From Ostrea edulis (lineage: Eukaryota), in contig NC_079164.1 in the NCBI RefSeq assembly GCF_947568905.1, positions 16,368,001 through 16,432,000 on the forward strand: a stretch of DNA of 64,000 bases, in the 5' to 3' direction. Both the position numbers and the translations under genes were made by a program. How positions within the stretch are numbered: position 1 is the stretch's first letter; every line of letters begins with the position of its first letter. Positions 1,228-48,784 of this stretch are shown in pieces. Below the pieces are notes generated by a model that saw only the letters and a program-made list of their open reading frames with translations, made no database searches and was not told the origin of the DNA.

Positions 1228-1610
1228 CAACATCAGAAATACGCGTTTAATGATGGATATGACTTATGGAATATGAATTATCACAGAACTATGGCACTCT
1301 CACAGAAACAGGAATATAACGTAACGCGAAGTTCCTCATCAATATATCCTCGATAAATTCCATCAGTCAACACGATGCGGCCCCTACAATGGCGTGCATG
1401 CCCGTTAGTTCTTTCATGTGGACGGATATGCTTCTTCACCTTTTCCTGAAAAATAAGGTGCATAAAATCAAAAGGATATAAAAGTGGAATTCTACTTCAA
1501 AATGACAATGTAAGTATCATATAGTAACACAAAATAGTGATGCACTGGAATTTATAGGTAGTCAATTGGCTTTCTCTATTTGTGTTTAGGTTTCTTGTAC
1601 TGGTACATAC
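1228..1610 (-). other. 3'-UTR intron (1610-1446, 165 nt) and non-coding last exon of BH3 gene A
   Basis: Donor CAA|GTATGT lies 14 nt after TAA. Acceptor is ccttatttttcag|G at 1446. ATTAAA at 1251-1246 is followed by a GU-rich tract. Confidence 0.6.
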
Positions 1611-1624
1611 TTGCATATTATTCC

Positions 1625-1873
1625 TTAGAATTTTCTTGTCGAACCCCGAATAAAGCTCCTAAGGAACGTCCATTTTTGTTTTAAGTCTCCAAAAATGGCA
1701 TCTTTAAGTCGATTTTCAAGAAGTGCGAGAAAGTTTAACCTTATATCAGAATATTCACGATCTATGTCGTCTCCGATTTCTTGTAATCTCCGGGCAACAT
1801 CGTGAATTATTTTTTCTTGGTACTCATCGGTCTGTGTAAAATCAGTACATACTGTAGATACTGTACAATCCAT
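1625..1873 (-). CDS. BH3-only-like protein A (82 aa, single coding exon)
   Basis: MDCTVST...QEKIIHDVARRLQEIGDDIDREY...LKDAIFGDLKQKW...RKF*. The core VARRLQEIGDDID (1760-1798) fits h1-small-x-x-L-x-x-I-G-D-x-h4-D. The ATG at 1873 has strong context (CAAAATGG). The track's ATG at 1963 lies only ~17 nt from the TATA box, so it is probably upstream of the TSS. Paralogous to 14732-14959 and 22514-22756. Confidence 0.8.
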   Translation of the reverse strand: MDCTVSTVCTDFTQTDEYQEKIIHDVARRLQEIGDDIDREYSDIRLNFLALLENRLKDAIFGDLKQKWTFLRSFIRGSTRKF

Positions 1874-1953
1874 TTTGAAAATATTTTCTGTTCGGACGCT
1901 GAAACTTCTACCATTAAAACTTAGGGGTACCGCAAGGCAGCCGAGGAAATTTA

Positions 1954-2079
1954 TCGATGCCATAACATTGTTGAGTAGACTTATATACTAGTTGTTCAAC
2001 TTGGTCCAAACCAAAGCTACCATACGATTGGCTTAAAATCTGGGTCAGTAGCCTAAGCTTCTGTTACGAGGGAAATCAC
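1954..2079 (-). promoter_or_regulatory. Core promoter of BH3 gene A
   Basis: TATATAAG at 1987-1980, CCAATC at 2031-2026, CAGTAGCCTAA at 2046-2056 (+), and kB-like GGGAAATCAC at 2070-2079 (+). Order and spacing match genes B and C. Confidence 0.7.
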
Positions 2080-3699
2080 TTATCTGAGCAGTATTACAGT
2101 ACTGAAAGGTTGATGACCTACTGAAAGGTATGGGATGGAATTAGGGTAATGATTATTCATCACATGATGCATATTCATTGAACTCTTCAAAAAATGAAAT
2201 AAATGCATACTGTGAATTTCTTTAACCACTCATTTACTGTTACACAAAACATGAAACTGATTTTTAGATTTTATGCAATTTAAATATTTTCTTTTAATGA
2301 ATTATGAAATGTGATATTTTGCATAACGTCTGAATATACTTCGAAAATTCATCTGTTTTCTATAATTGTCACTACCATGAGCTTGTGGTTCGCTGATGCA
2401 ATTTTATTCTGAATATATAATATCTTTTTATTAACATCTTGAGATTTAGTAGGAGATAAAGATTTTGAAGCCTACTAATTAATACTTGTGTCTGTTGTAC
2501 CCGATCCAAATTAACCTAAAATAGCCGGGGCCACTGATCGGAAAAGGTGTGAAATGACCGTCGTGTTTAATACGCTATACAAACTGAAAACCGCATTAGA
2601 AATTAACAATCACTTTACTTTTATTGTGCACATTCGGCTGTTCAACTGCAGGTGTGAATGTATTACAAGTAATTTACTATCATTACACGATTTTAAACAC
2701 TTCTAATGGGTTTTCCATTCACAGTCCTGTTGATCTTCTAATCACAGTAGACATGACTCAGTTTGAGACATCCATATATTTCTATCTACTTATTCCATAT
2801 TTCCCTCTTTGCTCAACAAATCCAAAATGACACCACAATATTATTCTTGTTTAAGATCATAATAGAAAACCTGAAGAAAGACTTTATAGGCACTGTCTTT
2901 ATCCTACCTTATAGTCAATTATTTGAATAACTGCTTGTATATTGCTTAGATTAAAAGAGTATTTATAATCTAAAAACAATTGCGTTGACCTACAGTTGAA
3001 ACAGTAAATTCTTCTTTTTTTAGACAAACTTCAGAAAAGGGCGTTTTTGTATTTTTAGCTTTATTCATTCCAACTCGGGGACAGCGGTAAGAAACCAACA
3101 TGTTGTGTAGTTTTTATTTTTTTTTTCATTTTGCAAAAAGGTTAAAAGACATTTGCATAAACAAATTTGCGAAGGTGTAGAAATCAACAATGCAAATTAC
3201 AATTGAAAGAACTTCTTTTCTTGAAATACTGAATCACTGGAAACCTAAAATTGGGACTAATTGCAAATGAATTCTGTCCTTTTATCACATCTCTCTCATT
3301 TACTGTCATACGTCGACACATAGCAAACTTCATTACGGGGAATCGACTTTGGTTAAGGGCTGGAAGTCTTATAATAAAGGTACAGGAAAATCTGCCAATC
3401 TTTTAATCAAATCCTTGGGTTTCCCGACTCTTCCTGGTAATGCGATCTAACGCATCAATTAGGGGATATCTGTGAGGATCTAGTGAAAACTCACAAGAAA
3501 AGGGTACTGACCACACGTTTATGCGATCGATGGGACTTCATTTACAGTATCAAATTGGGTCTTCCTGGCAAAATTGATTGCAAAGCGTTACATTTTACAT
3601 CCTGTCATTTAATTCTAGAAAATAAATGTCAAGAGAAATGATCTGTTTTTCTTATTATCGGTTTTGATTAAAACTTTTGTGATGAGGAATTATCATTAT

Positions 3700-5308
3700 C
3701 TATTTCTTATAATTTTTAAATTTTTGTGAGAAAATGTGTTTTCGACGAAAATGCATTTTCATTTGTTCCTGTGTAAATGCTTTCAAAACTTCACGCGTTC
3801 CATCAACAATTATCCTTTCACCATTTTCACGCACAAAACTACATGCAAGGGATTGATAACAACAGCATGAAATGCTGATGACTGCGTCATTATGTATATG
3901 CACAAATAAAACAAAATAATTAATTACCACACCGATTATTATAATTAACATTATCATTATGAAACCTTATTTGACAGTTTTGCTTTTTTTACAATATAGA
4001 TTAAACTCGAGCAACAATTTGTCATCCCTGTTAGTGAGTAGTTTTGCTGCATATGCTCACTGATAAAATCAATGTGTATACGGTGAGAGTGTTCGGTGAG
4101 ACTTGTGCACTATTGATGTGTGTATGGCAGGTGCACAAGCCTCAGAGGACGGAGGGATAACCGACTAATTGGAACTGAGGTCACTGATTTATAAGTAATA
4201 ACCCAATCTGCTTGATATACTTTGATTTATGTGTATGCATCTTCATATCATTAATGTGTGCGCTTCACCTTGATGGACATGTCGATCAACGGTTTTCTGT
4301 ATCGTGTGGGGATGCTTGAAAGAAAGAAAACCGAATTAGAATTATTATCAATAACATTATTCATGGATGGGTGAATAATATTTGAATTATTATTCTTTAT
4401 AAGAAAAAACCAGAATCCTTTTAAAAATACGCAAATTGCGTAAATATATATGTTTAATTATTTTGTAAAGCATTTTCATATATGCACTAAATTTTTAAAA
4501 TTAAAGACAATAAATACAATGTAAATTCATTTTAATGCATTTTTTTCCAAAATAAAGATTGAACAAAATGTAGTATTTAATGTATGATTTAGTTAAACTG
4601 CACATTGGTTGACGCCACGATGTTTAGGTCCAAAATTGATATCGTAGACCACTCGCGGCATGGTTGACTACAATATTGATTAAAATTCTATGATATTCTA
4701 TAGAATTAGGCGGATATAGAATTTTTTGTACCTCTCTCCATCACATCACTGTAAACTGTATTTGACTGTGTCTACTGGTAGTACATGTACACGCGCATGT
4801 ATTAAACTATTCTGTAGTACCAGTGCCTAAATGCATATTGATGGAAAGATTTCGGGAATGTAAATTTCCTTTGTAGTAGGGTTTACCCTTTTTCCTATAC
4901 CTTTACAAGTAATGTCAAGCAGTCCACTAGTGGTATTCGAGTCTAATGATCGAGTGATAATCATTTTGGATTTTAAATTCTGAATGAAGTTAAGCTAAGC
5001 TCATTACCGTGTGGATCTTTTTTTTATCAGAATGAATAGGATGTAGGTGGTAATTTTAACTGTCCAGTTTCGGAAACACTTCACAGCCTGTTCACACGTT
5101 AATCTGAAATATAAAACAAACATGCATTTTTTAGAGATTCGTAAATCCTATTCCGATTCATACAAATTTAACTGACCGTGAAACACTTTAATACGATTAT
5201 TATGGGGCGTCATCCTTACTGATTTTACACATCGAAGAATAGCATACACATGTAGTACCGTGCATGACGTATAGTAATTTCTCTTCTCTTTAATTCATCT
5301 TCACTCAT
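3700..5308 (-). CDS. Speculative 3-exon small ORF (5308-5259, 5103-5008, 3838-3700)
   Basis: GT-AG sites give in-frame phase-2 joins: MSEDELKRREITIRHAR / LTCEQAVKCFRNWTVKITTYILFILIKKRSTR / FVRENGERIIVDGTREVLKAF...KK*. No recognisable domain, and the first donor (GTACTA) is weak. Confidence 0.2.
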
Positions 5309-8077
5309 TGTAGGATAGTACTGAAAAATATATACCATAAAAATAAAATAGTATTAGAATAAAGTTAGAACCTTACAAATACAACAGATAAAGAAAACTT
5401 AAGGTAAACATATTGGAGTTAATCATTGTAAATGCTGAATGTCTTGCAGACTTTTATATTTGCCTTTGTTTCATTGGCCATTGATCATTTTCTGTTATGA
5501 TATTCTATTACTTTGTAGTGTTCATATCAAATAATTATGATTCATTTTCCTCCTACTATTTCAGTTATAAATTTATCTACTACTTCGCTAAAAGTAGACT
5601 AGTATATACATGTATATATATAATGCTCAACAGAAGGGCGAGGGTCAGTGACTGTAGGAAGGAAATAAAACAGAATCAGGTTCAACACAGGAGATCGTGT
5701 AGTATACAAACAATCCTACATTAAACACATTAGAATTCGTTGTCGTTTTCACAATTTTTTTTTCAATGTTGTGTACTTCGATTCATGAACACCTGTCACC
5801 AGGTTGGGTAAGGATTACTATATTTAACCCCTGAATATATAATCCCCTACAGGTGTCCTCATAATGCTTGATATAAGCCCCACAAATGCACTGTGAAGTG
5901 GTTCCTATATAGACTGTGCAATAAGGTCTTGCAAACAAAATAAGCATTGTTAATGGAATGACGTGTAGCTAGTGTACATGGAATTACTGAAGTTAATATG
6001 ATGTTTGTGTGGAAAGAATAGGAATATATTATTTGATATATTTCATCGCGTTTATAGAAAAATAAGATAGTGCATATATTACTGTAAACAATGCGAGAAA
6101 TTTAAATCTTCTCTTAAGATTCGTGTAAAAATATAATTACGGATTCGGGGGGGGGGGTATTTTACAGAAAGGTACGCGTCGTCCGCCAGCTGTATCGATA
6201 GAGGGTGTGTGCAACCTCAATTACAGTTATTCCCAATTAGTAAAAATTATGCGTTTTGCAATTCAATATCATGCTACATAATTTGTAATATAATTGTTTT
6301 CTTTTTAACCATTTTTCTTAGTACAATTTATCATTTTCAGGAAGGATTTTCTCTTTGAGTTAGTCGTTAGTTCCGGTAGAATCTCGAACCCGACTTCATT
6401 TATCCGTACTTCGTATTGCTATTGCAAAAAGTTAGTTTAGGCAATGCTTTAAATTTTATGTTCGCTATGTGTTTTAAAAAGTTTGGTTATTCTTGATGCA
6501 CATAGCTTTACTGTCTATATTCAACAGAAATCAAAGTAGATGTACATGTATTGATGTGTAATGTGCTAATGGAGATGAACGATCGGGCGGGGTATTCATA
6601 ACTATGAATAATTAGGGTTGCTAACAAAAATGCTTCACCGATTTCTTGACTTAATAGAAGTTGACGTATTTATAATTTTACTCTTACCGTAATATGTCAT
6701 TTTCTATGCAAATGCAATGCAATTAGCTGAATAAACATCACAAATTCCTTTTTTTTTATTTCCAGTTAACAAGAGCACCTAACCGATACCCTATATATGT
6801 ATGTCTCGTATATCATACAACAAAGCATTTTTAAAACTCTGTAACGATTGCAGTAAATATGTTAAAAAGTTCACATATTCCACTTCTACCCCAAAAGCAA
6901 ATGACACAGTTTAATAATTTCAGTCACTGCTAAATATTAAAGAGAAGGAAATAGCAACATCCATACCCTTGCCGTTTTTATTTTGATTTGAATTACTTGT
7001 GTTGGAAGTATTTGTATGCTGCACAGATGAAATTGAAAGGAGACTGTTTAATTTCATTGATGTGGAAAAGAAGTGGAGTAACTATGTCCTAGATATTTTC
7101 CCACATAAGTTTCAAATCTGTACCATGATGTTGCTATGCATACATGTAAACGTGTTAGGAATTACAGTAGTATACAACATATGACTATCAAGGTGTCAAA
7201 ATAAGAAATTTATTATCAAATAACATGGTATTAAATTGTATTATCACTATTGATTATAGTGCTGTTTTGTTTAGCTGCAATACACATACACTGCTGATAA
7301 AATTTCGTTTTCCCACACGCTCTTATCTGTTGGAATACACCAGCGTTGGTAGAGCTAATTACATTGCCTCAACTGAAAAAAAAGTATCAGGCATGACTGC
7401 TTCATCAAAGCAGTAAGTGAACTTCGAATGCACGTGTGAATTTTGACACTGAAATATACACTTTAAGTAACATGTAACTATTCTAGAAAATTCATATTCA
7501 ATATAAAACACATTTTATATAATGTAAATTGGGTATTTCTTTATCATCAAATTTGTTGTGCAAGACTACGTTCTTAGAGGTCTGAAAATAATAAATCATT
7601 AAAAATTTGTCGCAGCAATGAAATCAAGATCCATAAGAAAGTTAATGCATTGAGATTAGATAAATTGAAATGCTTACTTTTTAGCAAAATTTAGGACAAA
7701 CTTTGAAAATATATGAGCATGGAGGCAGTTCTAGTTTTGAATAGGTGTAAACCTTACCGAAAAACGTCTGCAAAGACATTGATATATTTGGCCAAAACAA
7801 TATCCAAGTACTTGACCAACGTATATGGTATAAGCAAAAAGATAACATAAATGGTGTCTCTATACAGTAGGTATGGAATTTAGAAAGCTAATCAAATTCA
7901 TTCATTTCAGTAATATATCCAATATCTATATATTGCTTACAACATATACCTGACAAGATTACAGCGACTACAATTTTCAAGTCTTCCCAGAATTTCCTTG
8001 AAGGTATTAAATCCCCATCTTGTTCTTCTACACAATATTTCATAAATGCTTTAAAGAGAAGGGGATTTGTTGTAATA

Positions 8078-9065
8078 TGAAAGGTGAAGATAACGAACAG
8101 TGATCAATCTCATAACTCGTATAAGCAATGCAAAATAGAGAGTTGGGCAAACACGGACCCCTGGACACACCAGAGGTGGGATCAGGTGCCTAGGAGGAGT
8201 AAGCATCCCCTGTCGACCGGTCACGCCCGCCGTGAGCCCTATATCTTGATTAGACCTAGGTAAACGGAGTTATCCGTAGTCAAAATCAGTGTGCCAAGAA
8301 CGGTCTAACAACCGGTATGAAACAAGTCAGACAGCATTTGACCGAATGATAGGTTGTATTGGCAAACTAGATTGTTATAACAACCATAGAATTTGCGAAA
8401 TACTGTCTTTAAACGAGACTGTTGAAACACCTGCACCATCAACTTCTTTGTCAGTAGCCTGCCTCGATTTAAAAACTGACCTTACGTAGAACAAGCTCCT
8501 GCGTATCGAATTAGTTGAGATATAAACACCATATGCAGGTGATTATGGAATATTGCTATATAAATATGGAAACATGACGATGCAGAAGCTGAATTCATCC
8601 CGTATGTCATAAAATTGAGTTGTTAGTTTGCCGTTAATATATACTTTCAATAAAATATCTAAGTATGATGCAGACGTGGACGACTCTGTGGTTTCTTTTA
8701 TTTCGAGTTCACAGGGATATATCGAATCGACGTATGAATGAAAGTTATTATTGTTGATAGATAAAACGCCGTTGATATATCTAAATGTCGAATTGAAGAC
8801 CACAGAGAGATATTTATTCTTCTCGTGTAGAAGTTTTTGAATAAATTCTGCTTCATCGGAAAATAAAAACAGGTCAGCTAACAAAGGAGCACAATTCATG
8901 CCCATGGAAATTTCAACAGACTGTTGGAAGAACTGATCACCAAAGACCACGAAGATATTGTTAATGAGGAACACCAGCATATTTTTTATTTCAACTTCAG
9001 AGTACTTGTGCGTGGAACCAGAGTGGTGTTAACAAAGTAATTTTTTGGATGACTGATCACTAGTT
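8078..9065 (-). mobile_element. Penelope-like retroelement, 5'-truncated, degenerate RT plus 3' terminus
   Basis: ORF 8543-8980 reads SMGMNCAPLLADLFL...FRYINGVL (YIDD mutated)...SASYLDILL...SNIP. The family terminus TGAAAGGTGAAGATAACGAACAGTGATC is at 8078. Confidence 0.85.
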
Positions 9066-9109
9066 ATAAATTTTGTGGCTTTTTTTTTTTTTTTTTTTTT
9101 TTAAAGAAG

Positions 9110-10012
9110 CAACTGTCTATGATATCCCTGTGAGCTCGAAATAAAAGACAACACAGAGTCGTCCACTTCTGCTTCATACTTAGATATTTTATTGAAAGTA
9201 GACATTAACGGCAAACTAACAACTCAATTTTATGACATACGTTTTTGGCACACTGATTTTGACTGCGGATAACTCCGTTTACCTGATCAGGATATGGGGC
9301 TCACGGCGGGTGTAACCGGTCAACAGGGAATGCTTACTCTTCCTAGGCACCTGATCCCACCTCTGGTGTGTCCAGGGGTCCGTGTTTGCCCAACTATCTA
9401 TTTTGTATTGCTTGTAGGAGTTATGAGATTGATCACTGTTCGTTATCTTCACCTTGCATTAACGGCAAACTGACAACTCAACTGTATGACAAACGGGATG
9501 ATTTCAGCTTCTCCATCGTCAACTTCCAGTATTTATGTAGCAATATTCCATTATCACCTGCATATGGTGTTTATATTTCTCAACTGATTCGATACGCAAG
9601 AGCTTGTTCTGCGTATAGTCAGTTTTTAAATCGAGGCAAGCTACTGACAAACAAGTTGATGGTACAGGGATTTCAACAGTCTCGATTGACGTCAGCATTT
9701 AGCAAATTCTATGGTCGTTATAACAATCTAGTTCGTCAATACAACCTATCATTGGGTCAAATGCTGTCTGATATGTTTCATACCGATTGTTAGGCCGTTC
9801 TTGGCACACTGATTTTGACTACGGATAACTCCGTTTACCTGATCAGGATATAGGGCTCAAGACGGGTGTGACCGGTCGACAGGGAATGCCTACTCCTCCT
9901 AGGCACCTGATCCAACCTCCGTGTGTCCAGGGGTCCGTGTTTGTCCAACTATCGACTTTGTATTGCTTATAGGAGTTACGAGATTGATCACTGTTCGTTA
10001 TCTTCACCTTCC
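9110..10012 (+). mobile_element. Penelope-like element, two tandem 3' pieces, inverted relative to 8078-9065
   Basis: RT thumb LYDKRDDFSFSIVNF...SNIPLSPAYGVYISQLIRYARACS...MFHTDC*. The terminal segment occurs twice, ending at ~9455 and ~10012. Confidence 0.85.
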
Positions 10013-10257
10013 ATCAAAGAGTGTAGTCAGTGTAAAGAAATTGTGGATTCTAAAGAAATTTTAGTACATTTGAAATGACAAAACTTTTTTTTCAAATCAA
10101 CAACATCAACACAGATGATTTTTCAACACTTTACATGACGAATCATCAAAATAAATCAAATACTAAACTTTTCCCACATCATAGACAGTTGTTTCTACAA
10201 CAGAAATGAAAAAAGGAAATATTCATATTTTGTGATCAGACATTCAAAAAATTACTT

Positions 10258-11845
10258 TCTAATATTCAATTATTACCTGCATATGGTGTTTATGTCTCTC
10301 AACTGATTCGATACACAAGAGCGTGTTCTGTGTATGATTAGTTTTTAAATCAACGCAGGCTACTGAAAAACAAGTTGTTGTTACAGGGGTTTCAACAGTC
10401 TCGTTTAAAGTAAGAATTTTGTATATTCTAAGGTCGTTATAACGATCTAGTTCGTCAATACAACCTGGCATTAGGTAAAATGCTGTCTGACCTGTTTGAT
10501 ACCAATTGTTAGGCCGTTCTTTACACACTGATATTGACTACGGATTACTCCGTATATCCTATCAAGATATAGGGCTCACGGCGGGTGTGATCGGTCGACA
10601 GATAATGATTACTCCTTCTAGGCACATGATTCCCCTTATGGTATGCCTAAGGGTCCGTGTTTACCTAACTCTAAATTTTGTATTCCTTATAAGAGTTATG
10701 CAATTAGATCCCTGTCGTTATCTTCACTTCTTCGTAGTCAAACTTTTCCTTGATTACTTCATTGTCTTTGGCTTATTTCCTTGTTCATATGACAGACATA
10801 ACTGCCTTCACTAAGAACTATAAAGGACTAGAAAGCTTTCTATTGTTTAAAAGTCCATATATTGAATAGATTAACACATCTGTATCACTAAATACAATGG
10901 CATTGCTGGATATTAGATATTTACTTAAAACTTCTACATAAGAAAAAAATAATGTTGTGGCCTGCAGCTACACATTTAGATATATCGACGACGTTTTACC
11001 AATTCAAAAAATACTCAAGATCATTCATGATCAAGACATAAGACTCACAGCGGGTGTGACCTGTCGACAGGGGATGCCTACTCCTCCTAGGCACTCAATC
11101 CCTCTTCTGGTGTGCCCAGGAGTCCGTGTTTGCCCAACTCTCTATTTTGTATTCCTTATAGGAGTTATGAGATTGTTCATTGTTCGTTATCTTCACCTTT
11201 CATATCTCGCTTTAATATATTCCAAATGAACTGGAAATCGAAAACCAGTCTTCCACATCTGCTTCACATTTAGATATTTTATTGAAGATAAATGTTAATG
11301 ACAAACTAACAACTCAACTGTATGACAAAAGGAATTACTTCAAGTTCTCCATCGTCAACTTCCCATCTTTATGTAGTAATATTCCATTATCACCTGCATA
11401 TGGTGCACATCCCTCAACTGATTCGATATGCAAGAGCTTGTTCTGCTTATGGTCATGTTTTAAATCGAGGCAAGCTACTGACAAACAAGTTGATGATAGA
11501 GGGGTTTCAATTGTCTGGATTAAAATCAGAATTTTGCGAATTCTATGATCTTTATTGCGATCTAATTTACCAATACAAGCTGGGTAAAATGATGCCTGAC
11601 ATGTTTCATGCCAAATGAAACCGCTCTTTACACACTGAGTTTGACTACTGATTACTCCGTTTGCATACCCGATCGAGAAATATGGCTCATGGCGGTTGTG
11701 ACCGGTCGACAGGGGATGCTTACTCATCCTGGGCACATGATCCCGCCTCTGGTATGTCCAGCGGTCTGTGTTGGCCCTACTCTTAAATTTGTATTCCAAT
11801 TAGGAGTTATGAGATTGATCACTGTTCATTGTTTTCATCTTTTCC
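10258..11845 (+). mobile_element. Three further degenerate Penelope-like 3' fragments (10258-10730, 10955-11200, 11235-11845)
   Basis: Same RT-thumb peptides (FRYIDDVL at ~10975; QLIRYARACS) and the same terminal sequence. Confidence 0.8.
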
Positions 11846-12139
11846 TAAACTTAGTACATGAATTCCACAATTTTGAATGAAAGCCATATAAATACAATAT
11901 AAATAGTTTTTTCTGCTGAATGTCCAGAAATACATGCAATTTTTTTTTATGAAATATTCATTTTTCAATATATGATAAGTTAACACTAATCTAAGTTCCA
12001 TGGATTTTAGAAGTTTAGTAGAGTGAAGAGGGCTCATTACATGTTATATATCATAGGTATACAAAGAGTTTGACAGTTAGATGTCAAAAAATGAAGACAA
12101 TTTTTAAACACAATACATATTCAATACGAGATGTTCAAC

Positions 12140-12990
12140 TTAGCGTCATATGGGGCCTGGATATTAGTAATGAATGTTTAAGGTTTTCAAAAAGATATTA
12201 CTTCTCATTATGATCATGCTAAAAGTTTGCCTGCTTGGTGTCCGGAAGTAAATGCTTTCTAAAACGTATTGCAATGACAACATATGATCAACTAAACCCC
12301 ATCCTGGAGTCTGAACTCTAAAACCCAGGGGTCATAAATTTCACATTGCTTATCAAAATTATGCAAACATTTTTTACCTTCTTGCTTTCAAGGAGAAACT
12401 ATTTTCTGAAATATATTGCATTTCCAATAAATGATCAACTAAGCCCTGGTACCTGAGCCCTGGGGTCATGAATTTCACAACTTTGGAAAAGGGTTCAATG
12501 TCCATTTTAATCATACACATGCCTCCTTTGATATCCAGAACTAAAGAGGAATATATTCTAAGATACAATGCACCATTGATATGTTCAGGGGTCCTTGTTT
12601 TTCCTTCTCTTAAATTTGTATCTTTGATAGGATTTATGAGATTGATCACTGTTCGGTATCTTCACTTGCTAATTTGCAATATAAGACCAACTTAACCAAG
12701 GGCCTGAACCCAGAGTTAATTAATTTCACAGTTGTGGAAATGGCCCATTTCTCATTATAATTATGCAGTTTGACTGCTTGTTGTCCAGAAGTAAATATTA
12801 CATTGATTTTGATGGTTTTGGCCACACACCCTCAGGCCCAAGGAGACAGAGACATTGAAAAAATTCAGGTTTTATTCCTTTCATGCATATATGTTATAAA
12901 CTAGAATTAAGTAAAATTGCTCCAGCCGTTCCAGAGAAGAATCTGAAAATGTTCAAACACACGACTAACGAGTGACTTGGGTAACCTGAA
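12140..12990. mobile_element. Degenerate non-autonomous Helitron/HINE-like repeat
   Basis: Internal ggggtcat(g/a)aatttcaca repeats at ~12328 and ~12462. Ends in gagtgacttgggtaacctgaaaaa, resembling a common bivalve subterminal palindrome. Confidence 0.4.
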
Positions 12991-14614
12991 AAAGAGAAGA
13001 AAGAAAAATAAAAACCTTCACATAACCAATGATATGAGTTTGTAAATGTTATCAAATGAAAAGAAAGCAATTTCAACCGTTCAAACAAAAACTAAAGAAA
13101 CATGTACAAGTTCATCTCAAGTTTAGCGATCTTTAAGTCTTAGAAATGCTTGACTACCGTGACGTCAGCGATCCTTCTTGTACAATAAACTTACAATGTA
13201 TAGTATACCTTTGGGTAGTGGTATTTGACTCGTTACGATTGAACCTCAGCAGGTTTGTTTTCTTTCACTGCTGAAATTTGCAGAGTGAAGGATATATTGA
13301 AACCAACTTACCACCTGTAAAAATACATAAAACTTTCACAGCCTCTCTCTTTTACTGTTCAAACAATTCAGATGTTGTTCTATTTGTTCCTCAGTCTAAT
13401 CTACACGAATTTGCAGTGTATCTCATTCTGACATATTGTAGTTGATCTAAATAGCTTTTGTATCTTTTATAACAAAAGTTAGATACTCAGGACGCCCTTA
13501 TAAACGATGAAGTGACATCTGTAGGTTTTTTTCGTTTTCTTCTAAATCGCAATTTATTCTTATTCTCTTCCCTTTCCGCTAGTCCATGCAGTACAAATCG
13601 TCTCATCTGACAAATTCTTTTAACTAGCAATTCTGATATTTGAATGTTCATTCCCCCACAAACACAGAAATTAGCGCTCATCCTCAAAATGTATCAACCT
13701 GCATATGCACAGATGCTGATAGATGAAAATAACGAAATCGGATTGATCGACCCTGTTATGGTGTGAACTCTTTGCACCTGTCCATTGCTACAGTAGGATG
13801 ATTCCGTCAGATTCAGTCAGTGTTCAACACCTATCATCTATACAAAACAAGTCTTCTTCGAGATGTCAAACACGTGGATCTCATTATACCAACGGACATT
13901 GCAGGGTACGTTACCGTGAGAATAAAAATGACATAACTCACACGGGAATGTGTTGTTGTCCTATTGTTTCCCTCATTAGTGTTTTTTGCATCCACGTGAT
14001 TTTGTAATGACTGGGAAATAGTTAGCTTTTGTGCAACCCAATGCGTATAACATTGTACCTAGATGAACATTACGCCTTATGCTATGTACAAAATTCTTAT
14101 ATTACTTTTCGAAAGACTTTCATTGAACTCCCTGGACCTTTTGGCACATTTGTAAACCCCCTTTAGAGCAAAATGTGCGTCATTTGTAACTTTTGAATAA
14201 ATTTGTCATCAAACGACAAAAGATACACTGTTGATAGGAATGGTGGAAATTTATTACATCAACATTGGAATCATACACCGGTTGAAAAAATAAACAAAAT
14301 TATATAATGTATATGGCACATTAAAACTTTCTGAAATAAATTCAGAAATAAATGTTTCCTTTGTAGTATTTTCACAAAATCACCGGTAACAGTTCATTTG
14401 ATTTCTTTTCGTTCTTTAGCATCAAAATGCTAATGCATAATACTGCGTGTATACACCGGGAAAGTATATGGCACAATGAAATGGATTGCACAAGAATATC
14501 GTAAACAGTTTCCTCAGAGGTGTCCACGCTACATCCCATCAGTCAAGAGAATGCGACATTTAGCCATCCTGATGCTGTTGATAAGTAATAAAATGGATGT
14601 CCATATCCCATCTT

Positions 14615-14728
14615 CTGAAAAATAGATCACAATGATAAGAATGTGGACTACTTGATCCTTACTTTAGATGTTTGTAAAATCTTGGATAAAAGTCTTTTGT
14701 GAATGGTTAACATCTAATGTGTTCTTAC
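14615..14728 (-). other. 3'-UTR intron of BH3 gene B (114 nt)
   Basis: Donor AAG|GTAAGA lies 3 nt after TGA. Acceptor is ctatttttcag|A at 14615. Candidate AATAAA at 14255-14250. Confidence 0.65.
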
Positions 14729-14731
14729 CTT

Positions 14732-14959
14732 TCATTCTATTAAATTTGTTAAGAGGGCAAATTGAGCAAGCTTTTCCTTCCAACTCTCTAAAATTGCATC
14801 TTTTAACTTCCTTTGCATCATTTGCATTAATTCCATCTTTAATGAAGAGTCCTTTTTGTCGAATTCATCTCCAATTTTTCTCAATTTGTTCACAATTTCG
14901 TCAATTATCTTCTCCTGGTCTTCCGCGTCACTGCCTTCTGCTACTCTGGTTATATCCAT
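14732..14959 (-). CDS. BH3-only-like protein B (75 aa)
   Basis: MDITRVAEGSDAEDQEKIIDEIVNKLRKIGDEFDKKDSS...KLKDAILESWKEKLAQFALLTNLIE*. BH3 core at 14858-14896. First ATG is at 14959 (CAAAATGG); the track ORF starts at an upstream TTG. Shares QEKII and LKDAI with gene A. Confidence 0.8.
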   Translation of the reverse strand: MDITRVAEGSDAEDQEKIIDEIVNKLRKIGDEFDKKDSSLKMELMQMMQRKLKDAILESWKEKLAQFALLTNLIE

Positions 14960-15042
14960 TTTGACTGCAGATTGCTTAAAAAGAAGTCTCTGTTTTCTTT
15001 CTTTGCTTTCAATACCACAATTATTGTAGCAACTCAACGATT

Positions 15043-15176
15043 TCGATATATAATGCAGATATCTTGACTTGTAAACTTATATACAATTTGTTCAATATGG
15101 CTGACGTAAAGTTGTAATGTGATTGGTTGAATGAAACTAGGCCAGTAGTCTAATGCCCTGTTGGAAGGGATATCCT
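15043..15176 (-). promoter_or_regulatory. Core promoter of BH3 gene B
   Basis: TATATAAG at 15083-15076 in a context matching gene A (TTGAACAAxTxGTATATAAGTxTAC). CRE/ATF-like TGACGTAA at 15102-15109, CCAATC at 15126-15121, CAGTAGTCTAATGCCCT at 15143-15159, kB-like GGGATATCCT at 15167-15176. Confidence 0.75.
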
Positions 15177-15263
15177 CCTTTATATTAATGCTATCATGAT
15201 ACATGTTCTGCAGGTGGATGACCTACGCCACCTGCAGGATAGACAAACCTTTAATAAAACGTT

Positions 15264-15265
<2 letters not shown>

Positions 15266-15315
<50 letters not shown>
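15266..15315. repeat. (TA)n microsatellite upstream of gene B
   Basis: About 25 perfect TA units. Confidence 0.95.
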
Positions 15316-15319
<4 letters not shown>

Positions 15320-17059
15320 TTCCAGATTGCAAAAGAATGTAAAACAAAATAAAAATGAAAAATGACAATATTTAAAAATATTTTTGCCTTATTTTTGGGT
15401 TTTGTTGTTGTTTTTTTTGGGTTTTTTTTGCTTCTAAGTAAAATATTTTTTTTAAAATACAAGCAAACATGTTGTGAACTTTTACTTTAATTTCTCTATC
15501 TAATACGTTTATTAGATTTATTTATTCAATTTATAATTCATCCGTATTAATCGATTACGATCACTCTTTTGGATTCGGTATGCAGATGGTGCATGCTCTA
15601 CAACCATGTGCAATGTACTAATTTTAATCTGATTAGGCTAACAATGCATTTACAATTAGTTCACAATTAGTTCAAACAATATGCACACCTTATTATTTAT
15701 GTTTTTGTCTTTGCCACCCCCATGAATGTCCTTTTAACGAGGTGATAACTAATGATAATCCAGGGGAGGGGGGGAGTGGGAGAACACAATTATATGTTGC
15801 ACAAATTCACGAGATTCAGCATGGATTACGAATGGATATAATGCAATAGATGGAACAAGTATACATTAGTATATGCATTTAGATGAATACAATAATTACG
15901 GATTGTTTAAAATACCTGTATTTATTTTTGTTTATAATTTATTAATTTTTTTCACAAATATCAACGTAAGACAAAGGCACATTTGTCATTTTTTCTAACC
16001 ACTTTCACACACTTTCATACTCACACTCATACTTTTGTTGGGAAGTGCTTGCATTTTTAATATAATTGTAGAAGAAAAATTATAACAATACTGAATAAAT
16101 AAATAAAAATACATGTGGCTTCAAAAGTAGAAAAAAAATAATGCTTAAATTAGCAAAATTATGATTTTTTTTATGTTGTCAAAAAGTGCTTTCCATCCAT
16201 GCCAGGTATTTTCAAATTCTTGTATTTCTAAGTTCTGGTATTAGTTTAAAATATCTAATAGGTACATTTTGTACGAATTTTGTTTTACATTTGATCCTCG
16301 TTTTGCCTCTTTTATTTTGAAATCAGGTGAAAAAATCATGATAAAGGGAATGAAAGAGAAAAGGCGATACTCATATAATTGGATTGAATATTATACTTTG
16401 TAGATGTCTTTGCTGTCAGTGTTTCATCTCTAAGCATTGTAGTTTGATAAATGGCTTAAGACATAAAAATCAATTTATTGCAATGCAACAACCATAATGC
16501 ATCCATAAGATTCTTCTTACATAGATATAGAATTAACAGAATTATCCTGAGGAATACTGATACACCGATACATAATTAACCGATTCAATAGCTTACAAAG
16601 TACAGAAATTATCAATTTGCATTCACGAGTCGGAGTCAGTGGCCGACGGAAATAGCCATATGCATTATAGATGATGTCCTGAGAGTCGGTGTGAACGCTC
16701 GCCCTCTGTCAGGATATACTATATCTATACACAGTTACCAAGGTGTACATTTTAAATCTTGTCCTACTACCCTGGTTTCAATCCAGGATTTTAACAATGT
16801 TCTGATGTATAAAGTTGTCCGTGAAACAGGATACAAATTTCAAATATAGGGCATACATATGTATCCTCAGTGTGCCTCCTTAGATAAGACGGAACTTTTT
16901 AACTTAAGTTCTAAAGAGCATGCTGTAGCAAATGCATCTTTGATTGGTAGTTAGAAACAACAACCACTACTCAATAACATTAGTTACGATATTTGAGGAA
17001 ATACATAAACAGTGGAGAGTGTAATTCATTTAAAGTCAAGCTTAGTTTCACATCATACC

Positions 17060-17700
17060 TCTAGTAAGAACAGGAAAGGCAAATATAACTAACAGTGATC
17101 AATCTCATAACTCCCAGGCGGAATAAAAAATAAAGAGTTGGGCAAACACGGACACCTGGACATACCAGAAGTGGGGGTCAGGTGTTAAGGAGGAGTAAGC
17201 ATCCCTTTTCGGACAGTCACATCCGTCGTGAGCCCTATGTCTTGATCAGCTAAACGGTGTAATCCGTCGTCAAAATCAGTGTGCAATGATGGCCTAACAA
17301 TCGGTATGATTTGATTGATTTTATATTCTCTAACGTCTCACTCCAGAATTTTTCACTCATATGGAGACGTTCAATCGGTATGGAAAACGTCAAACCGCAT
17401 TTGACTAAATGATAAGTGATAAGGGCAAACTAGATAGCTATAACAACTATAGAATTTGCGAAATGCAGACTTCAAACGAGACTGTTGAAACCCCTGTAGC
17501 ACCAACTTGTTTGTCAGTAGCCGGTATCGATTTAAAAACTGATCATACGCAGAACAAGCTCTTGAGGTCTTGTGTATCGAATCTGTTGAGATATATAAAC
17601 ACCATATGCAGGTAATAGTTGAATATTGCTCATTAACATGGGGAGTTGACGATGGAGAAGCTGCAATCATCCCGTTTGTCATACAATTGACATCCAAACA
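17060..17700 (-). mobile_element. Penelope-like 3' fragment
   Basis: RACSAYDQFLNRYRLLTNKLVLQGFQQSRLKSAFRKFY...FHTD* plus the family terminus. Confidence 0.8.
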
Positions 17701-19529
17701 CTTTCAAAAATGCACTAAAAATTATAGCATTGCTCTTGCATTGAAGAAATATATGCCATTATTGTTACTTGAACCTCGTACTTAAGGAGGTTTTACCGCT
17801 ATGTCATAATTTCGTAATACCATTATGGGTAAAGTACTTGTGATAAAAAGTAGAAAAGATATAAGAATGAAAAGGTAAAGGTAGATATTATGATATGAAC
17901 AAGTAATTTCCGGGATGTACATTGATATATTACAGGTATCAGACGCCGAAAGTTAACAAAACAGAGTATAGCTCTCGAAGATTTCATTGTATATAGTGGA
18001 ATTGCCATGCGTCTTTTGTCTAATACATGTACATCTATAACCGATTTCACGTGAAACGGTTCATAATAAAAGGAAAGGTGAACAATTGAATTATGTAAAA
18101 CTTTTTGTTTTCAGTCCATCCGAAAAACGATTTCATTCAAAATGACAGGTCACTAGCTTTGAGTGAAGTGCCACAGATTTTGACTTATGCATGCACTCCG
18201 TTTATAGAGCTCATGGTGTATATGACCGGTCGACAAGGGATGCTTACTCCTCCTGTGCACCTGGGGTCCGTTTCACAAAAAGGCCTACGACCATATGAAA
18301 GTTTCGTCGGACGTAAAAACACGACTAAGTCACAAAACCGGACTAATATGCGTTTCATAAAACAGACTACGTTTGCACCCGACTAAATTTATGGCTTAAA
18401 TTTAGGCTTGCCCATGACCATGTGAAACTCTTAGTCTGTTAAGAACTAAACAACTAAACAAATAATGGCGACGGTGTTGATTTTGAAGCAACGCAGACAG
18501 CGGCAAAAAAGGAAAGGATTTTCAGAGATCGATCAAATTGTGATGTTTTTGTTAATTCCTATCGTTATAAACTTCAAACAGTTCTGCTTAAAGTGGAATC
18601 CATTGCATTAATGCATTGTAAAAACAAATAGTCACACCTAATATTTCAAAAATTGTTTTGTATGATATATATAGTGAAAAATGTTTCTGGGAACAAACTT
18701 ATGGGCAACTACTGTACATGTATATCTGATGATGAATATTGAAAGCTTTCAATTTAAAAAATAATTCATTTGACTTGCATTTATACGAAAACCACGGTAC
18801 GTAAAACGTTACAGGCATGTTTTAAAATTATTCTATTTTAGTACCAAGGAACATTAATGTCGAGCGTCTAGAAATTTATTCTCTCCAATCAATCAAGTTT
18901 AAAGAAAAAGAAATTGTATCCACTGACCTATAAGTTACAATTTTTATATCCTCCAAGTTGTGATGGTAATCTATTAAAGAGGGTAAAGACTGCATATTGA
19001 GTCCTTATTTTAAATTTTGGGGAAGAGTGGGGGGAAGGTAAATTCCAACAACATGTTATAGCATTTTTCCTTTTAATATTCATCTGAACGTTTGGTATAT
19101 TTCATCTTTTGAAAGACTAAACTACTTACTATTTGGTGATTTCGTTCCAGATTCCCTTCTTTTTCTCCGAAGTGATATCTCTAAAAAATTTGCAAACAGA
19201 ATTTCACTATTTTCGCGAATTGATGATGCTAGCACTTGTTATTCATCATCCGTTCAATTACGTTTTCTTTTAATGATAAATACGTCATTATATTTTGTCT
19301 TGAATACTGAATTAGACGACAGTAGCAATGCACGAAATATACATGCTTTCCTGCAATGAACTGTTGAAATGTAGAAGTTATACACGCAATATACATGCTT
19401 GATGACACTACAATTCCAGTAATTTTGTTGCGTTAATGTGTATTTCACACATGTATATACAAGTGAAACTAATTTACCATGTGCTTCCCAGGTCATTTTA
19501 ACTATTACCCTAGTGAACTCAAATTAAAA

Positions 19530-20500
19530 GACACCACGGAGTCTTCCATATCTGTTTCACACTTGAACATATTATTGAACATAGCTGTTAACGGCATATT
19601 AACAACTCAACGTTAACAAAAACGGGATGACTTCAGCATCTCCATCGTCAACTTCCCATATTTATGTAGCAACATTCCATTATTTCTTACATATTCTGTT
19701 TATCTGTCCTAACTGATTCGATATCCAAGAGCTTTTTATAGGTATTGTCAGTTTTTAACACGAGGTAGGCTATTGACAAACAAGTTGATGTTACAGGTGT
19801 TTCAACAGTCTCCTTTAAAGTCAGCATTTCTCAAATTATATGTCGTTATAATGATGCAAGGTGAAGATAACGAACAGTGAACAATCTCATAACTCCTACA
19901 AGCAATACAAAATAGATAGTTGGGCAAACACGGACCCCTGGACACACCAGAGGTGGGATCAGGTGCCTAGGAGGAGTAAGCATCCCCTGTTGATCTAATT
20001 TACCAATAAGACCCGCCATGACATGTTTTATACCACTTGAGTCTGTTCTTTACACACTGATTTTGATTTTGACTACAAATTAATCCGTTTACCCGATCGA
20101 AAAATATTGCTCGTGTGAATGGTCGACAGGGGATGTTTACTCCTCCTAGGCACCTCTGTATATGTCCAGGGGCCCGTGTTTGCCCTAGCCTACTCTTAAT
20201 TTTGTATTCTTTATAAGATTTATGGGATTGATCAATATTTGTTATCTTCACTTTTTCAATATAACATGAAAAGGTCCGTTCTTGTTATAGAAAGTCAGGT
20301 AATATTTTGGCAATTACCTTCATCTGGACAACTTCTGTTTGTATTTTGCATTCCCGATTTTGACTTTTTTCGGCTTCTCAATAAGATCGCAGGTTGTTTT
20401 CGAATTGGTCCAATTGCGACATCAACTTGAAAAATAGAAACTTGGCTTGCTTATGGGAGTTATGAGATTGATCACTGGTCGTTATCTTCACCTTTCATTC
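19530..20500. mobile_element. Rearranged Penelope-like fragments in alternating orientation
   Basis: Plus-strand RT thumb at 19530-19855, minus-strand terminus at 19858-20000, plus-strand termini at 20000-20250 and 20445-20500. Confidence 0.75.
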
Positions 20501-20577
20501 TTATGTTTAGATTTTCAACCACTCTCGTTGTGAAATTAACAAATATATCATATCATACGATAACCAGGCTTGAAGAC

Positions 20578-21342
20578 AATAAACTGAGAATAGACTTAAG
20601 GTGGATTGATCCTCATTTGACTTATCAATATGAATGGTTAAAAGTTGAAAAACTGTATTAATTTCCACTCAATATAATTTAATTTAATAAATAACCGAAG
20701 AAAATGTGTATGTTGCCACCTTTTTAAAGATGTCCGACATACAAAAACAGAAGTATATATCAACATTAAACAATCACACAATTTCGTTAAACAGAATAAT
20801 GAAAATTAATAAATACTTACTGAAATGACAAATTTTAAATGTCAACAGTTTAAGAAAACTGCTAATTCATAGATATATCAAGATTAATTGGGGATATTAG
20901 GGCAATCATTGTGTCATAGACATGCAGTATAGGAAATTCCAGCATAGGAGTTATTGCCCTTGACAACATTTTTAAAATTATAAATAATTTATTATCTATG
21001 GAAAATAAAACTTTTTCAGTATCAAAAGTTTACCAAATTTTTTTACTTTATTCAGTGAATGAAATTCCTCTGAAAAATATATTTCTACTATGCGCAAAAT
21101 TTAATTAAATAAAGATTTTGCAAAAACCTGTGACATCACATGAGGATCGATCAACCTTAAGTCAATTTTTTTAATTATTATTTACACCTTAAAGATTCAT
21201 CTAGCACAGATATTTGAAAAATGATGGTTTATTTAAAAAATCAATGCAAACATATACTGAATTTTTTTTTTTTTTTATAAAAATTATTTCAAAAGTATGT
21301 TGGATTTTAGATTTAGACTTAAGTTTTTCTCAGTTTATGGTC
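20578..21342. mobile_element. MITE-like element with ~22-bp imperfect TIRs; related internal sequence at ~47800-48090
   Basis: Left end ataaactgagaatagacttaag versus right end cttaagtttttctcagtttat. The internal block 20760-21000 resembles 47810-48060. Confidence 0.55.
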
Positions 21343-22303
21343 TCGAGGCAGCACTTCATTCGTCTGGCAACATAAAAACATAATTTCTATAAATATAAAG
21401 TATATACAAACCAGTGTGAGTGGTTTAAGATTTAAAAAACCTAATTTCAAGCATTTGAAGGAAATCGTCAGATAATGATTTTGCAGTTATAAACATACAT
21501 AAGAATTTAGTTTTAAAATAATTTTTATTGAATATAGAAAGCAACAATAAGAAATAACACACCATTGCTTTGGATGTGGGAATCACTAACAAATAATTAT
21601 GAAAACGATATGAAAGTAACAAAACATCTGGCGAATGTAAACCAAATGGTACAGAGACAGAGTTAATCGAAGCCAATCATTACAATGGCTTATACACAAA
21701 ACACATTACAAATGTGAAAAAAGTAAATGTAGCATGAAATAAGTTTTGCTGATTTGACTGAAAAATAATGGTACGCTGTGTATAAATAATCTATGTTTAC
21801 TTTGACTTCACTAATGGTAAACAGGAATTCATTTTAACTCACTAGAAAAAGATAAACAACATGCTTAATTATACTTAGTCAAAATTGTCTTTACTTAACT
21901 GAAACAAAACTGGAAAATGGACATAAATTGATATCATGTTTGAAATTTCAATTCATAAACTAGTGAAAAATACTCAACATTGTTCATACAAGTTTCTATA
22001 ATACACCGGATACACATTACTGACGTTTGGCACATCAATCCTGAGATAAGTAAAACCGTTTCACCTGAGATCGTTTAAGTGTGCAGAAAGTACAAGAGTT
22101 CTCGTAAAGTTTATGTATAATTATATATCATCCAAGTAGTATATATATGTACATATTTATATACATATATATGATATCACAGCTCCAATGTGAAACGCAC
22201 GACGAATATCCACTTTCACTCTGGTAAAACTATCAGCACATCATATTGAGCGTTATGACTCTTGTGTATACAGCTGCCCATGTAGCTAATTGATATATAC
22301 AAT

Positions 22304-22488
22304 CTGCAAATTAAAATTACATTTATTAGTATATCATTGGTTTGAATAAGTTATAATTCATTTGACAATATAGATATGTTTTAATTCATTGATGAGTGTT
22401 ATGAACAATTTTATAATTCATTTGACAATATAGATAGGTTTTAATTCATTAATGAGTGTTATGACCAATTTTACATCAAAGTACTCAC
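22304..22488 (-). other. 3'-UTR intron of BH3 gene C (185 nt), containing a 60-bp tandem duplication
   Basis: Donor AAG|GTGAGT lies 25 nt after TAG. Acceptor is ttttaatttgcag|A at 22304. The unit ttataattcatttgacaatataga...tgagtgttatga(a/c)caatt occurs twice at ~22352-22472. Confidence 0.65.
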
Positions 22489-22513
22489 CTTAAGATCCCA
22501 GACTCTGTAGGTA

Positions 22514-22756
22514 CTATACAGCCATTGCAAGGTGTTTCAGTGAAACAAACATCAATTCTTCGAAGTACCTCCTCATCCTTTTTGCAGTATTACTTCTGTC
22601 TAAGGAATGTGTTTTGTCCAACTCGTCTCCAATTGTCCTCAACCGTTCAGCAACAATTCGTATTGTTTTCTGCTGATTCTCTATGTTGGAGATTTCGATA
22701 TCACCAAAATCATTTACTTCTATAACCTCCATGATGTGTTTATGTTCCTGCTCCAT
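22514..22756 (-). CDS. BH3-only-like protein C (80 aa)
   Basis: MEQEHKH...NQQKTIRIVAERLRTIGDELDKTHSL...RYFEELMFVSLKHLAMAV*. The core VAERLRTIGDELD (22616-22654) closely resembles BIM (IAQELRRIGDEFN) and BIK (LALRLACIGDEMD). Confidence 0.8.
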   Translation of the reverse strand: MEQEHKHIMEVIEVNDFGDIEISNIENQQKTIRIVAERLRTIGDELDKTHSLDRSNTAKRMRRYFEELMFVSLKHLAMAV

Positions 22757-22809: not shown

Positions 22810-22945
22810 TATCGATACTAAATTCTCATTCAATAGGCCATTATATATACATACTGAGATATACATGTCAATATCCAATGTGCTGATCCGATTGGACACC
22901 AGTAACTGTGTCAGTAGTCTAATGCCCTACTGTCCGGGATACTCG
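22810..22945 (-). promoter_or_regulatory. Core promoter of BH3 gene C
   Basis: TATATATAA at 22849-22841, CCAATC at 22895-22890, CAGTAGTCTAATGCCCT at 22912-22928 (identical to gene B), kB-like GGGATACTCG at 22936-22945, and TATCGATA near the inferred TSS (22810-22817). Confidence 0.75.
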
Positions 22946-48600: not shown

Positions 48601-48784
48601 TTGCCGCTCGTTGTAGGAACTCCTATTCGATTCACGCTCGTTGTAGGAACTCCTATTCGATTCACGCTCGTTGTAGGAACTCCTATTCGATTCACACTCG
48701 TTGTAGGAACTCCTAATCGATTCACGCTCGTTGTAGGGACTCCTATTCGATTCACGCTCGTTGTAGGGACTCCTATTCGATTCA
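48601..48784. repeat. 30-bp minisatellite x6
   Basis: (TTCACGCTCGTTGTAGG(A/G)ACTCCTATTCGA)6. Confidence 0.95.

Follow-up and report, generated by a model that had tools for sequence, protein, structure and literature searches.

A tandem cluster of three candidate BH3-only genes in Ostrea edulis

We analysed a stretch of 64,000 nucleotides from Ostrea edulis (assembly GCF_947568905.1, contig NC_079164.1, positions 16,368,001 to 16,432,000 of the forward strand), hereafter the window, which carries three small genes, A, B and C, all on its minus strand. All coordinates below are positions in this window. The proteins have in common a motif of the Bcl-2 homology 3 (BH3) type, and we propose that the genes form a lineage-specific BH3-only family that is gated at the level of transcription, a reading of the sequence to which we give a probability of roughly 0.65. 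We favour it because the proteins are small, because the BH3 is their sole invariant element, because they lack a Bcl-2 fold and because they evolve fast outside the motif. The position of the BH3 on the second-to-last exon and a strongly conserved promoter speak for it as well.

The genes and their conserved motif

Counting the stop codons, the listed open reading frames (ORFs) run from 1625 to 1963 (A), from 14732 to 15037 (B) and from 22514 to 22756 (C). They lie where a first-pass annotation of this DNA had placed them, and the peptide blocks that it quoted are exact. The coding sequences are as follows.

Gene A, 1628..1873, minus strand: 82 amino acids (aa), stop TAA at 1625-1627; A-type subfamily (IGDDID), BH3 core V26-A-R-R-L30-Q-E-I33-G34-D35-D-I37-D38
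Gene B, 14735..14959, minus strand: 75 aa, stop TGA at 14732-14734; B-type subfamily (IGDEFD), BH3 core I22-V-N-K-L26-R-K-I29-G30-D31-E-F33-D34, the most BIM-like core
Gene C, 22517..22756, minus strand: 80 aa from the ATG at 22756, 72 aa from the conserved Met at 22732; BH3 core V-A-E-R-L-R-T-I-G-D-E-L-D

Two of the starts need correction. The upstream ATG of gene A (1963) lies about 18 nt past the end of the TATA box, probably upstream of the transcription start; the conserved form is the 82-aa protein starting at 1873, and this exact protein is present in population contigs. In gene C, the conserved start is the second methionine (Met-9, 22732), since the orthologue on contig L035 lacks the first ATG, and this start gives 72 aa. 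The start context, AAAATGGA(T/G), giving M-D/E, is kept across species.

Along the direction of transcription the genes follow each other as C, B, A in a tandem cluster. In tblastn comparisons inside this stretch, A and B align at 33% identity over 72 aa (E about 1e-9), and C aligns with either of them at 35-36% identity over 50-55 aa (E 1e-4 to 1e-5). These alignments reach well past the motif and, together with a common promoter and intron position, they bear out the paralogy that had been proposed. No fourth copy was found by tblastn in the 64-kb window, and the pattern L..[IVLM]GD[DE][IVLMF] has exactly three matches in its six-frame translation, all in the ORFs of A, B and C. The invariant residues are encoded by different codons in the three genes.

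Across an alignment of 21 family members, only the L, I, G and D of L-x-x-I-G-D are invariant. All 21 cores fit [IV]-[AV]-x-x-L-x-x-I-G-D-[DE]-[FILM]-[DNHE], and all are strongly amphipathic (hydrophobic moment 0.49-0.77). The elements by which a BH3 is recognised, namely an amphipathic helix, the positions h1-h4, an invariant Leu at h2, and a small residue with an invariant Asp after h3, are thus present in 21 of 21. We searched the family profile against 177,635 distinct PDB sequences. The first-ranked match was a BID BH3 peptide (2voi_B, E 5.5e-6) and the second full-length BID (1ddb, E 2.3e-5); other matches were human BID forms (E 1.6e-3 to 4.1e-3), the PXT1 BH3 (E 2.4e-3), BIM (E 6.5e-3), BAK (E 0.048), BAX (E 0.08) and BIK (E 0.44). 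The majority of the best 60 matches are BH3 peptides or Bcl-2 proteins.

Among Pfam models, BID (PF06393) matches 13 of 15 members (best E 5.5e-5) at about positions 73-116 of its 191. The BIM BH3 model (PF08945, Bclx_interact; 4/15 members), CF222 (4/15) and BMF (1/15) give weaker matches than BID; for PF08945, whose cutoff is 25 bits, the scores lie at 12.9-13.5 bits, with E 0.067-0.11 for B and C and 0.019 for the best member. The BID, Bclx_interact and BMF matches all fall on the BH3 stretch. In the language-model search, those neighbours of A and B that have names belong to PXT1, NOXA, BIM, BMF, BIK and PUMA clusters, which we treat as leads only because their scores are 0.76-0.86. The PDB profile search, Pfam and these neighbours agree that the conserved block is a BH3 motif, as the first-pass annotation had it.

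The proteins are acidic, 72-82 aa long and without a signal peptide. Given the family alignment, AlphaFold2 models them as one continuous helix (residues 7-74; mean predicted local distance difference test score 82, predicted template modelling score 0.37) with no globular fold. No transmembrane segment was found, the highest 19-residue Kyte-Doolittle mean being at most 1.54. Neither a BH1 (NWG[RK]) nor a BH2 (GGW) pattern occurs in the six-frame translation of the whole 64 kb, and no family member matches the Pfam Bcl-2 model (PF00452), so the proteins do not qualify as multi-domain Bcl-2 proteins. Their size, the single-helix model, the pattern search and a stop codon before the splice donor (see below) all indicate that they have no BH1, BH2 or BH4 and no Bcl-2 helical bundle; as had been claimed, there is no room for BH1 and BH2.

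Several points weigh against a BH3-only function. BH3-like motifs are short and often false positives, so that biochemical verification is needed (PMC7022251). The Pfam BID scores (15.9-23.3 bits) are all below the gathering threshold of 25 bits and cover the BH3 stretch only. The proteins have no tail anchor, unlike many BH3-only proteins, and a confident continuous helix in place of a disordered chain could also fit a coiled-coil adaptor, the hydrophobic spacing of 3-4 residues being common to BH3 motifs and coiled coils. The C-terminal half of B evolves with a ratio of non-synonymous to synonymous substitution rates (dN/dS) of about 1.4, and part of the protein may therefore be unconstrained. 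Finally, there is no transcript contig among the Logan, ENA and JGI contigs that encode exact family proteins. The contigs fetched, including short ones of ~0.9-1.2 kb, are colinear with genomic DNA, introns and promoters included. Because all public contigs reached are genomic, transcription and the splice pattern are read from signals and conservation.

The best of the alternatives, which we consider possible though clearly less probable than a BH3-only family, is that the block is a BH3-like short linear motif with a role outside mitochondrial apoptosis. The proteins might then be helical or coiled-coil adaptors, ligands of Bcl-2 homologues that regulate autophagy, calcium or mitochondrial dynamics and do not kill, or decoys that dampen death. 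One long, confident helix with no disorder would suit such a role, as would the conserved amphipathic pattern LKDxxF/L..K.K in the second half of the protein, and non-apoptotic proteins, Beclin-1 among them, can carry BH3-like motifs (PMC7022251). However, the invariant residues are the exact BH3 signature, and a Gly-Asp pair is unusual within a coiled coil. The profile matches are mostly true BH3 ligands, not coiled-coil proteins, and the sole coiled-coil match (P0020, see below) covers only the non-BH3 part. The small size and the TATA-driven, highly conserved promoter also fit an inducible trigger.

Since BID is the best match by both the PDB profile search and Pfam, the genes could instead be true relatives of vertebrate BID, in which the BH3-bearing segment goes back to a common ancestor and is not a lineage-specific invention; in function the two readings are compatible. 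The BH3 core and about eight residues N-terminal to it do align with BID. The gene A protein and a mouse BID peptide (ESQEEIIHNIARHLAQIGDEMD) both read E-x-Q-E-x-I-I-H-x-[IV]-A-R-x-L-x-x-I-G-D-x-[IM]-D, with about 13 of 22 residues identical. Nothing aligns after the BH3, however: a second aligned stretch scores 1.1 bits, and only about 25-44 of the 191 Pfam profile positions are matched. Membership of the BID family would show as a score at or above the threshold and a match along the helical bundle, whereas the best score is 23.3 bits and the model is a single helix. The proteins are less than half the length of BID and have neither its helical-bundle fold nor its hydrophobic helical hairpin, nor, in 72-82 aa, any apparent caspase-cleavable N-terminal inhibitory segment. 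BID has been reported only from jawed vertebrates, not before the cartilaginous fishes (PMC8998228), and convergence on a 22-residue helix is plausible. We regard common ancestry with BID as improbable. A bolder version of the death-switch reading given below would nevertheless take the BID-like extension of the motif as shared ancestry with vertebrate BID and carry the BID BH3 module back to the bilaterian ancestor.

Gene structure and promoters

Consensus splice signals and conservation, rather than RNA, give the same layout for A, B and C. The coding sequence lies wholly in exon 1, and a short intron begins just past the stop codon, with a consensus GT donor 2-18 nt 3' of the stop and a polypyrimidine-AG acceptor 114-185 nt beyond the donor. 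The predicted elements, in the 3' untranslated region (3'UTR), are listed here with a slash at each splice junction.

Gene A 3'UTR intron, 1446..1610, minus strand: 165 nt, donor CAA/GTATGT, acceptor TTTTTCAG/G
Gene A exon 2, 1445 to about 1225, minus strand: AATAAA near 1250
Gene B 3'UTR intron, 14615..14728, minus strand: 114 nt, donor AAG/GTAAGA 3 nt past the stop, acceptor TTTTTCAG/A
Gene B exon 2, 14614 to about 14225, minus strand: AATAAA at 14249-14254
Gene C 3'UTR intron, 22304..22488, minus strand: 185 nt, donor AAG/GTGAGT, acceptor TTTGCAG/A

The donor of gene A is 14 nt past the end of the stop codon, or 18 nt from its first base. The common intron position reported earlier is real, but it falls outside the coding sequence: in all three genes the donor follows the stop, which places the intron in the 3'UTR. 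With the predicted junction less than 50 nt from the stop, nonsense-mediated decay is not expected. The BH3 is encoded on a single exon, the second-to-last of the predicted two-exon genes, which is the arrangement described for BH3-only genes and a mark of membership (PMC7022251), although in the oyster family the last exon is non-coding.

A consensus donor after each ORF and a predicted second exon might also mean that each ORF is just the initial coding exon of a longer gene, of the multi-domain Bcl-2 family or BID-like. We think this very unlikely. All genes and species examined, namely the window species and contigs from four or more further sample sets, have an in-frame stop 1-30 nt ahead of the donor, and exon 2 carries frame-breaking indels between orthologues, which are only 74% identical there. 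The first-pass annotation had named splicing from an internal donor into BH1/BH2 exons as one outcome that would speak against its reading; the stop precedes the only donor, and the 64 kb hold no BH1/BH2 coding potential. An exhaustive HMMER search also gave no relative of greater length.

The predicted second exons of A (1225-1445) and B (about 14215-14613) contain a common short element, TTGACTGATGG, which appears as GGACTGACGGG on contig L008, the contig of the B orthologue. It could be a site of post-transcriptional control.

Upstream of the coding sequences, the earlier claim of common promoter boxes proved sound for TATATAA, CCAAT, TTAG(A/G)CTACTG(A/G)CC and AGGTCATYMACCT. In all three genes a TATA box stands 90-120 nt 5' of the start codon and CCAAT ~40 nt further upstream, followed by the TTAG(A/G)CTACTG(A/G)CC box and then by the AGGTCATYMACCT box.

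Gene A promoter, 1980..2140, minus strand: TATATAAG at 1980-1987, CCAAT at 2027-2031, TTAGGCTACTGACC at 2043-2056, AGGTCATCAACCT box further upstream
Gene B promoter, 15076..15224, minus strand: TATATAAG at 15076-15083, CCAAT at 15122-15126, TTAGACTACTGGCC at 15140-15153, GGATATCCC at 15167-15175
Gene B promoter, distal part, minus strand: AGAACATGTATCATG at 15195-15209, AGGTCATCCACCT at 15212-15224
Gene C promoter, 22841..22990, minus strand: TATATATAA at 22841-22849, CCAAT at 22891-22895, TTAGACTACTGAC at 22910-22922, GGTTCATTAACCT box upstream

An alignment of eight promoters from four sample sets gives AGGTCATYMACCT, ATTAATA, GGATATCCC, TTAGACTACTGACC, CCAATCA and TATATAA as conserved boxes, while a AGAACATGTAYCAT box is common to B-type promoters and not found in the A or C types. 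The boxes are kept across species, and also among paralogues with a protein identity of only about 30%. When gene B is compared with its L008 orthologue, identity is 89.7% in the core promoter, 77.5% in the intron, 74.1% in exon 2, 79.6% in the coding sequence and 93.1% in the BH3. That the promoter is conserved above the intron and exon 2 may point to tight, shared transcriptional control of the genes.

As to the inducing factors, the AGAACATGTAYCAT box of B-type promoters was considered as a p53 site and set aside as a weak lead, having one half-site that fits at 9/10 positions, no convincing second one, and no counterpart in the A and C types. The GGATATCCC box resembles a Rel/NF-kB site, with a perfect GGGATATCCC in L020, and is another weak lead. 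A (TA)n microsatellite (15271-15320) lies directly upstream of the conserved gene B promoter, and population contigs end or vary there.

Relatives, selection and variation

The relatives of A, B and C are unnamed proteins of 72-133 aa. Their genes lie on contigs from several other species and repeat both the layout and the tandem order seen in the window. A word-indexed search with B returned only the same species and one JGI protein of 71% identity. The exhaustive HMMER search, in which a four-sequence profile was run against 1.84 billion representatives, gave eleven more cluster representatives (75-133 aa, same layout), and a later profile search added further members. The sources are Logan, ENA and JGI assemblies, and all members are unnamed in the protein collection searched, in agreement with the suspicion that such genes are under-annotated. 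The top HMMER match (P0020, E 2e-38), a 4665-aa repetitive coiled-coil protein, was rejected as spurious because its 49 weak repeats match the non-BH3 part only and it has no BH3. As regards a viral origin, the family is absent from the 2.9 million viral contigs searched, and a scan of JGI metagenomes with protein A gave no relative.

The B orthologue on L008 has 63% protein identity, and its start, stop, TGAAAG/GTAAGA donor, acceptor and AATAAA are all kept. In the C orthologue on L035, the stop TGA directly abuts G/GTGAGC, and L020 encodes a 99-aa B-type protein with TAAAAG/GTAAAG at its stop and donor. The A-type includes P0022 and P0094 as relatives of gene A. Contigs L028, L030 and L036 have the same gene layout. 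Three family genes lie on L028, where a B-like gene is followed 5 kb downstream on the same strand by an A-like one; this is the B-then-A order of the window and indicates that the cluster is old. Each type is single-copy, with gene order conserved.

In a maximum-likelihood tree the C-type is well set apart (support 97/99), and the A-type (86/72) and B-type (80/98) have moderate support; P0029, P0030 and P0031 form a looser set, with P0025 nearby. The branches of the tree are long and its deep forks weak. The three subfamilies may differ in partner preference or in the signal that induces them.

Two of the contigs hold further observations. L036 (JGI 3300005037), from an unrelated metagenome sample, carries a distant member at 1365-1766 (133 aa as called), with CCAAT upstream and a donor 15 nt past the stop, which suggests a family range wider than the window species and its nearest relatives. 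On L008 (1-520, minus strand), a C-type promoter stands head-to-head with the B orthologue. After it comes a residual piece of the C-terminal coding part (ending in YLEEFISLSMKHLIIKLERIQSFES and a stop), from which the BH3-coding part is missing. This remnant is likely a pseudogene, the intact C orthologue being that on L035.

We calculated dN/dS by the Nei-Gojobori method from single orthologue pairs of 72-75 codons each. For B and its L008 orthologue, the ratio is 0.60 over the whole ORF, and falls to 0.037 over the 24 codons around the BH3, with four synonymous changes and one non-synonymous change. It is 0.62 over the N-terminal 12 codons and 1.37 over the C-terminal 39. For C and its L035 orthologue the whole ORF gives 0.21, and its parts give similar values. 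The purifying selection on BH3 codons that the first-pass annotation called for is thus visible in both genes, over the BH3 in B and over the whole ORF in C. The synonymous changes within the BH3 imply that selection preserves the protein encoded in this frame, and not the DNA or antisense ORFs.

A further alternative, that the ORFs arose by chance within non-coding RNA genes or a transposable element, is strongly disfavoured. In its favour, the region is rich in transposon fragments and no source has a name for the proteins. Against it, ORF length, start context and stop position are kept across species, dN/dS is low (0.21 for C and, over the BH3, 0.04 for B) while synonymous sites change freely, the invariant residues use different codons, and each type is single-copy in a conserved gene order.

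Population variants of A and C contain nine amino-acid polymorphisms, all outside the 13-residue BH3 cores, a distribution that is not significant on its own. Diversity of single-nucleotide polymorphisms near B is low, in population contigs that were picked for an identical protein and so exclude non-synonymous variants by construction. The reference stop of gene C (TAG, 22514-22516) is itself polymorphic (population variants P0013-P0019): in other haplotypes, TAG is replaced by GAG and eight codons are added, up to a TAA at 22490-22492, 1 nt before the donor. Such stop-codon polymorphism recurs in the family. Variants in other species, P0047 (A-like) and P0090 (P0091-like), have Trp at the stop position, apparently through a change of TGA to TGG, and after splicing would read into exon 2.

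Proposed mechanism, known counterparts and setting

If A, B and C are BH3-only genes, their proteins would be kept off at the level of transcription until the genes are induced. The amphipathic BH3 helix would then place its four hydrophobic residues in the groove of pro-survival Bcl-2 homologues and/or of Bak/Bax, where the invariant Asp would pair with a conserved BH1 Arg and the invariant Gly would permit close packing. Bak/Bax, freed or activated in this way, would permeabilise the mitochondria, and the release of cytochrome c would lead to caspase activation. We draw this mechanism, as the most likely one, from established BH3-only biology and from the BH3-dependent interactions of oyster Bcl-2, Bcl-xL, Bak and Bax, all of which are functional (PMC5550854). 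Going further, we lean narrowly towards the view that the family is the long-missing BH3-only arm of the molluscan death switch, that is, an ancient, tandem and co-regulated set of at least three subtypes that would bind Bcl-2/Bcl-xL/Mcl-1-like proteins or Bak/Bax and trigger cytochrome c release.

Among known systems, BIM, BMF, PUMA, NOXA, BIK, HRK and PXT1 are likewise small proteins defined by a single BH3, and the BH3 peptides of BIM, BAK, BAX, BIK and PXT1 are all matched by the family profile. There is no detectable homology with the vertebrate BH3-only proteins outside the motif, and the oyster family also differs from them in having no tail anchor and in being predicted as a continuous helix, not as disordered. 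The B-type core, LRKIGDEFD, closely resembles that of BIM, and in their small size and hydrophobic C-terminal stretch the proteins recall NOXA. EGL-1 and CED-13 of C. elegans, the Schistosoma sjA-type and the Hydra candidates are also lineage-specific small BH3-only genes, and are likened here by type, not by sequence.

No BH3-only protein had been identified in Mollusca according to papers of 2013 (PMC3634015), 2017 (PMC5550854) and 2022 (PMC8917759), and a 2024 survey of lophotrochozoan apoptosis gives multi-motif Bcl-2 proteins only (PMC11463336). The BH3-only proteins of platyhelminths demonstrate that a tripartite Bcl-2 switch can operate in lophotrochozoans (PMC7022251, PMC8998228), and published searches that started from EGL-1 or schistosome proteins came up empty in the other branches of the protostomes (PMC8998228). 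Suraweera et al. (2022, PMC8998228) describe BH3-only proteins as 'potentially present in Lophotrochozoa', and their Fig. 5a legend names potential BH3 regions of Crassostrea virginica, C. gigas, Mizuhopecten, Lottia, Octopus, Capitella and Lingula, retrieved with human Bim, Bad and Bmf as BLAST seeds. Compared by this legend only, their candidates possibly overlap with our family, and B-type members would be plausible matches of the Bim seed. A gene cluster is not described there, nor are promoters, selection or a family analysed. The novelty of the family accordingly has two sides: we found no description of the cluster, the gene structure, the promoter conservation or the selection pattern, but potential oyster BH3 regions are already listed there.

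Haemocyte apoptosis is central to the response of oysters to ostreid herpesvirus 1 (OsHV-1), Vibrio, parasites, toxic algae, heat and hypoxia, and bivalve apoptosis is also relevant to transmissible neoplasia. The supposed lack of molluscan BH3-only proteins has been built into hypotheses of a simpler network, or of p53 acting directly on Bcl-2 homologues. The locus now gives concrete candidates, with defined BH3 peptides, promoters and orthologues. Should the proteins bind and kill, the molluscan pathway would be tripartite, as in vertebrates and flatworms, and the conserved promoter would be a handle on the signals that trigger death. Should they do neither, they would be a clean example of a perfect BH3 look-alike.

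The cluster sits in transposon-rich DNA. Between A, B and C there are many short repeated ORFs on both strands, with 'GMLTPPRHLIPPLVCPGVRVCPT' and 'FRYIDDVL'. Among the retroelement debris listed below, one reverse-transcriptase fragment matches Pfam RVT_1 (E 2e-20), and another ORF matches DUF6451.

8000-12000: retroelement debris
17300-20300: retroelement debris
43062-46686: minisatellite of 28 bp, unit ATAGATCTAGACAATCTCACAGAACAGA, about 130 copies, 90% match
48605-48784: second small array, 30 bp, 6 copies
53735-54349, minus strand: retroelement debris
56933-57649, minus strand: retroelement debris

The 28-bp minisatellite accounts for the strong AT and GC skew at 42-48 kb.

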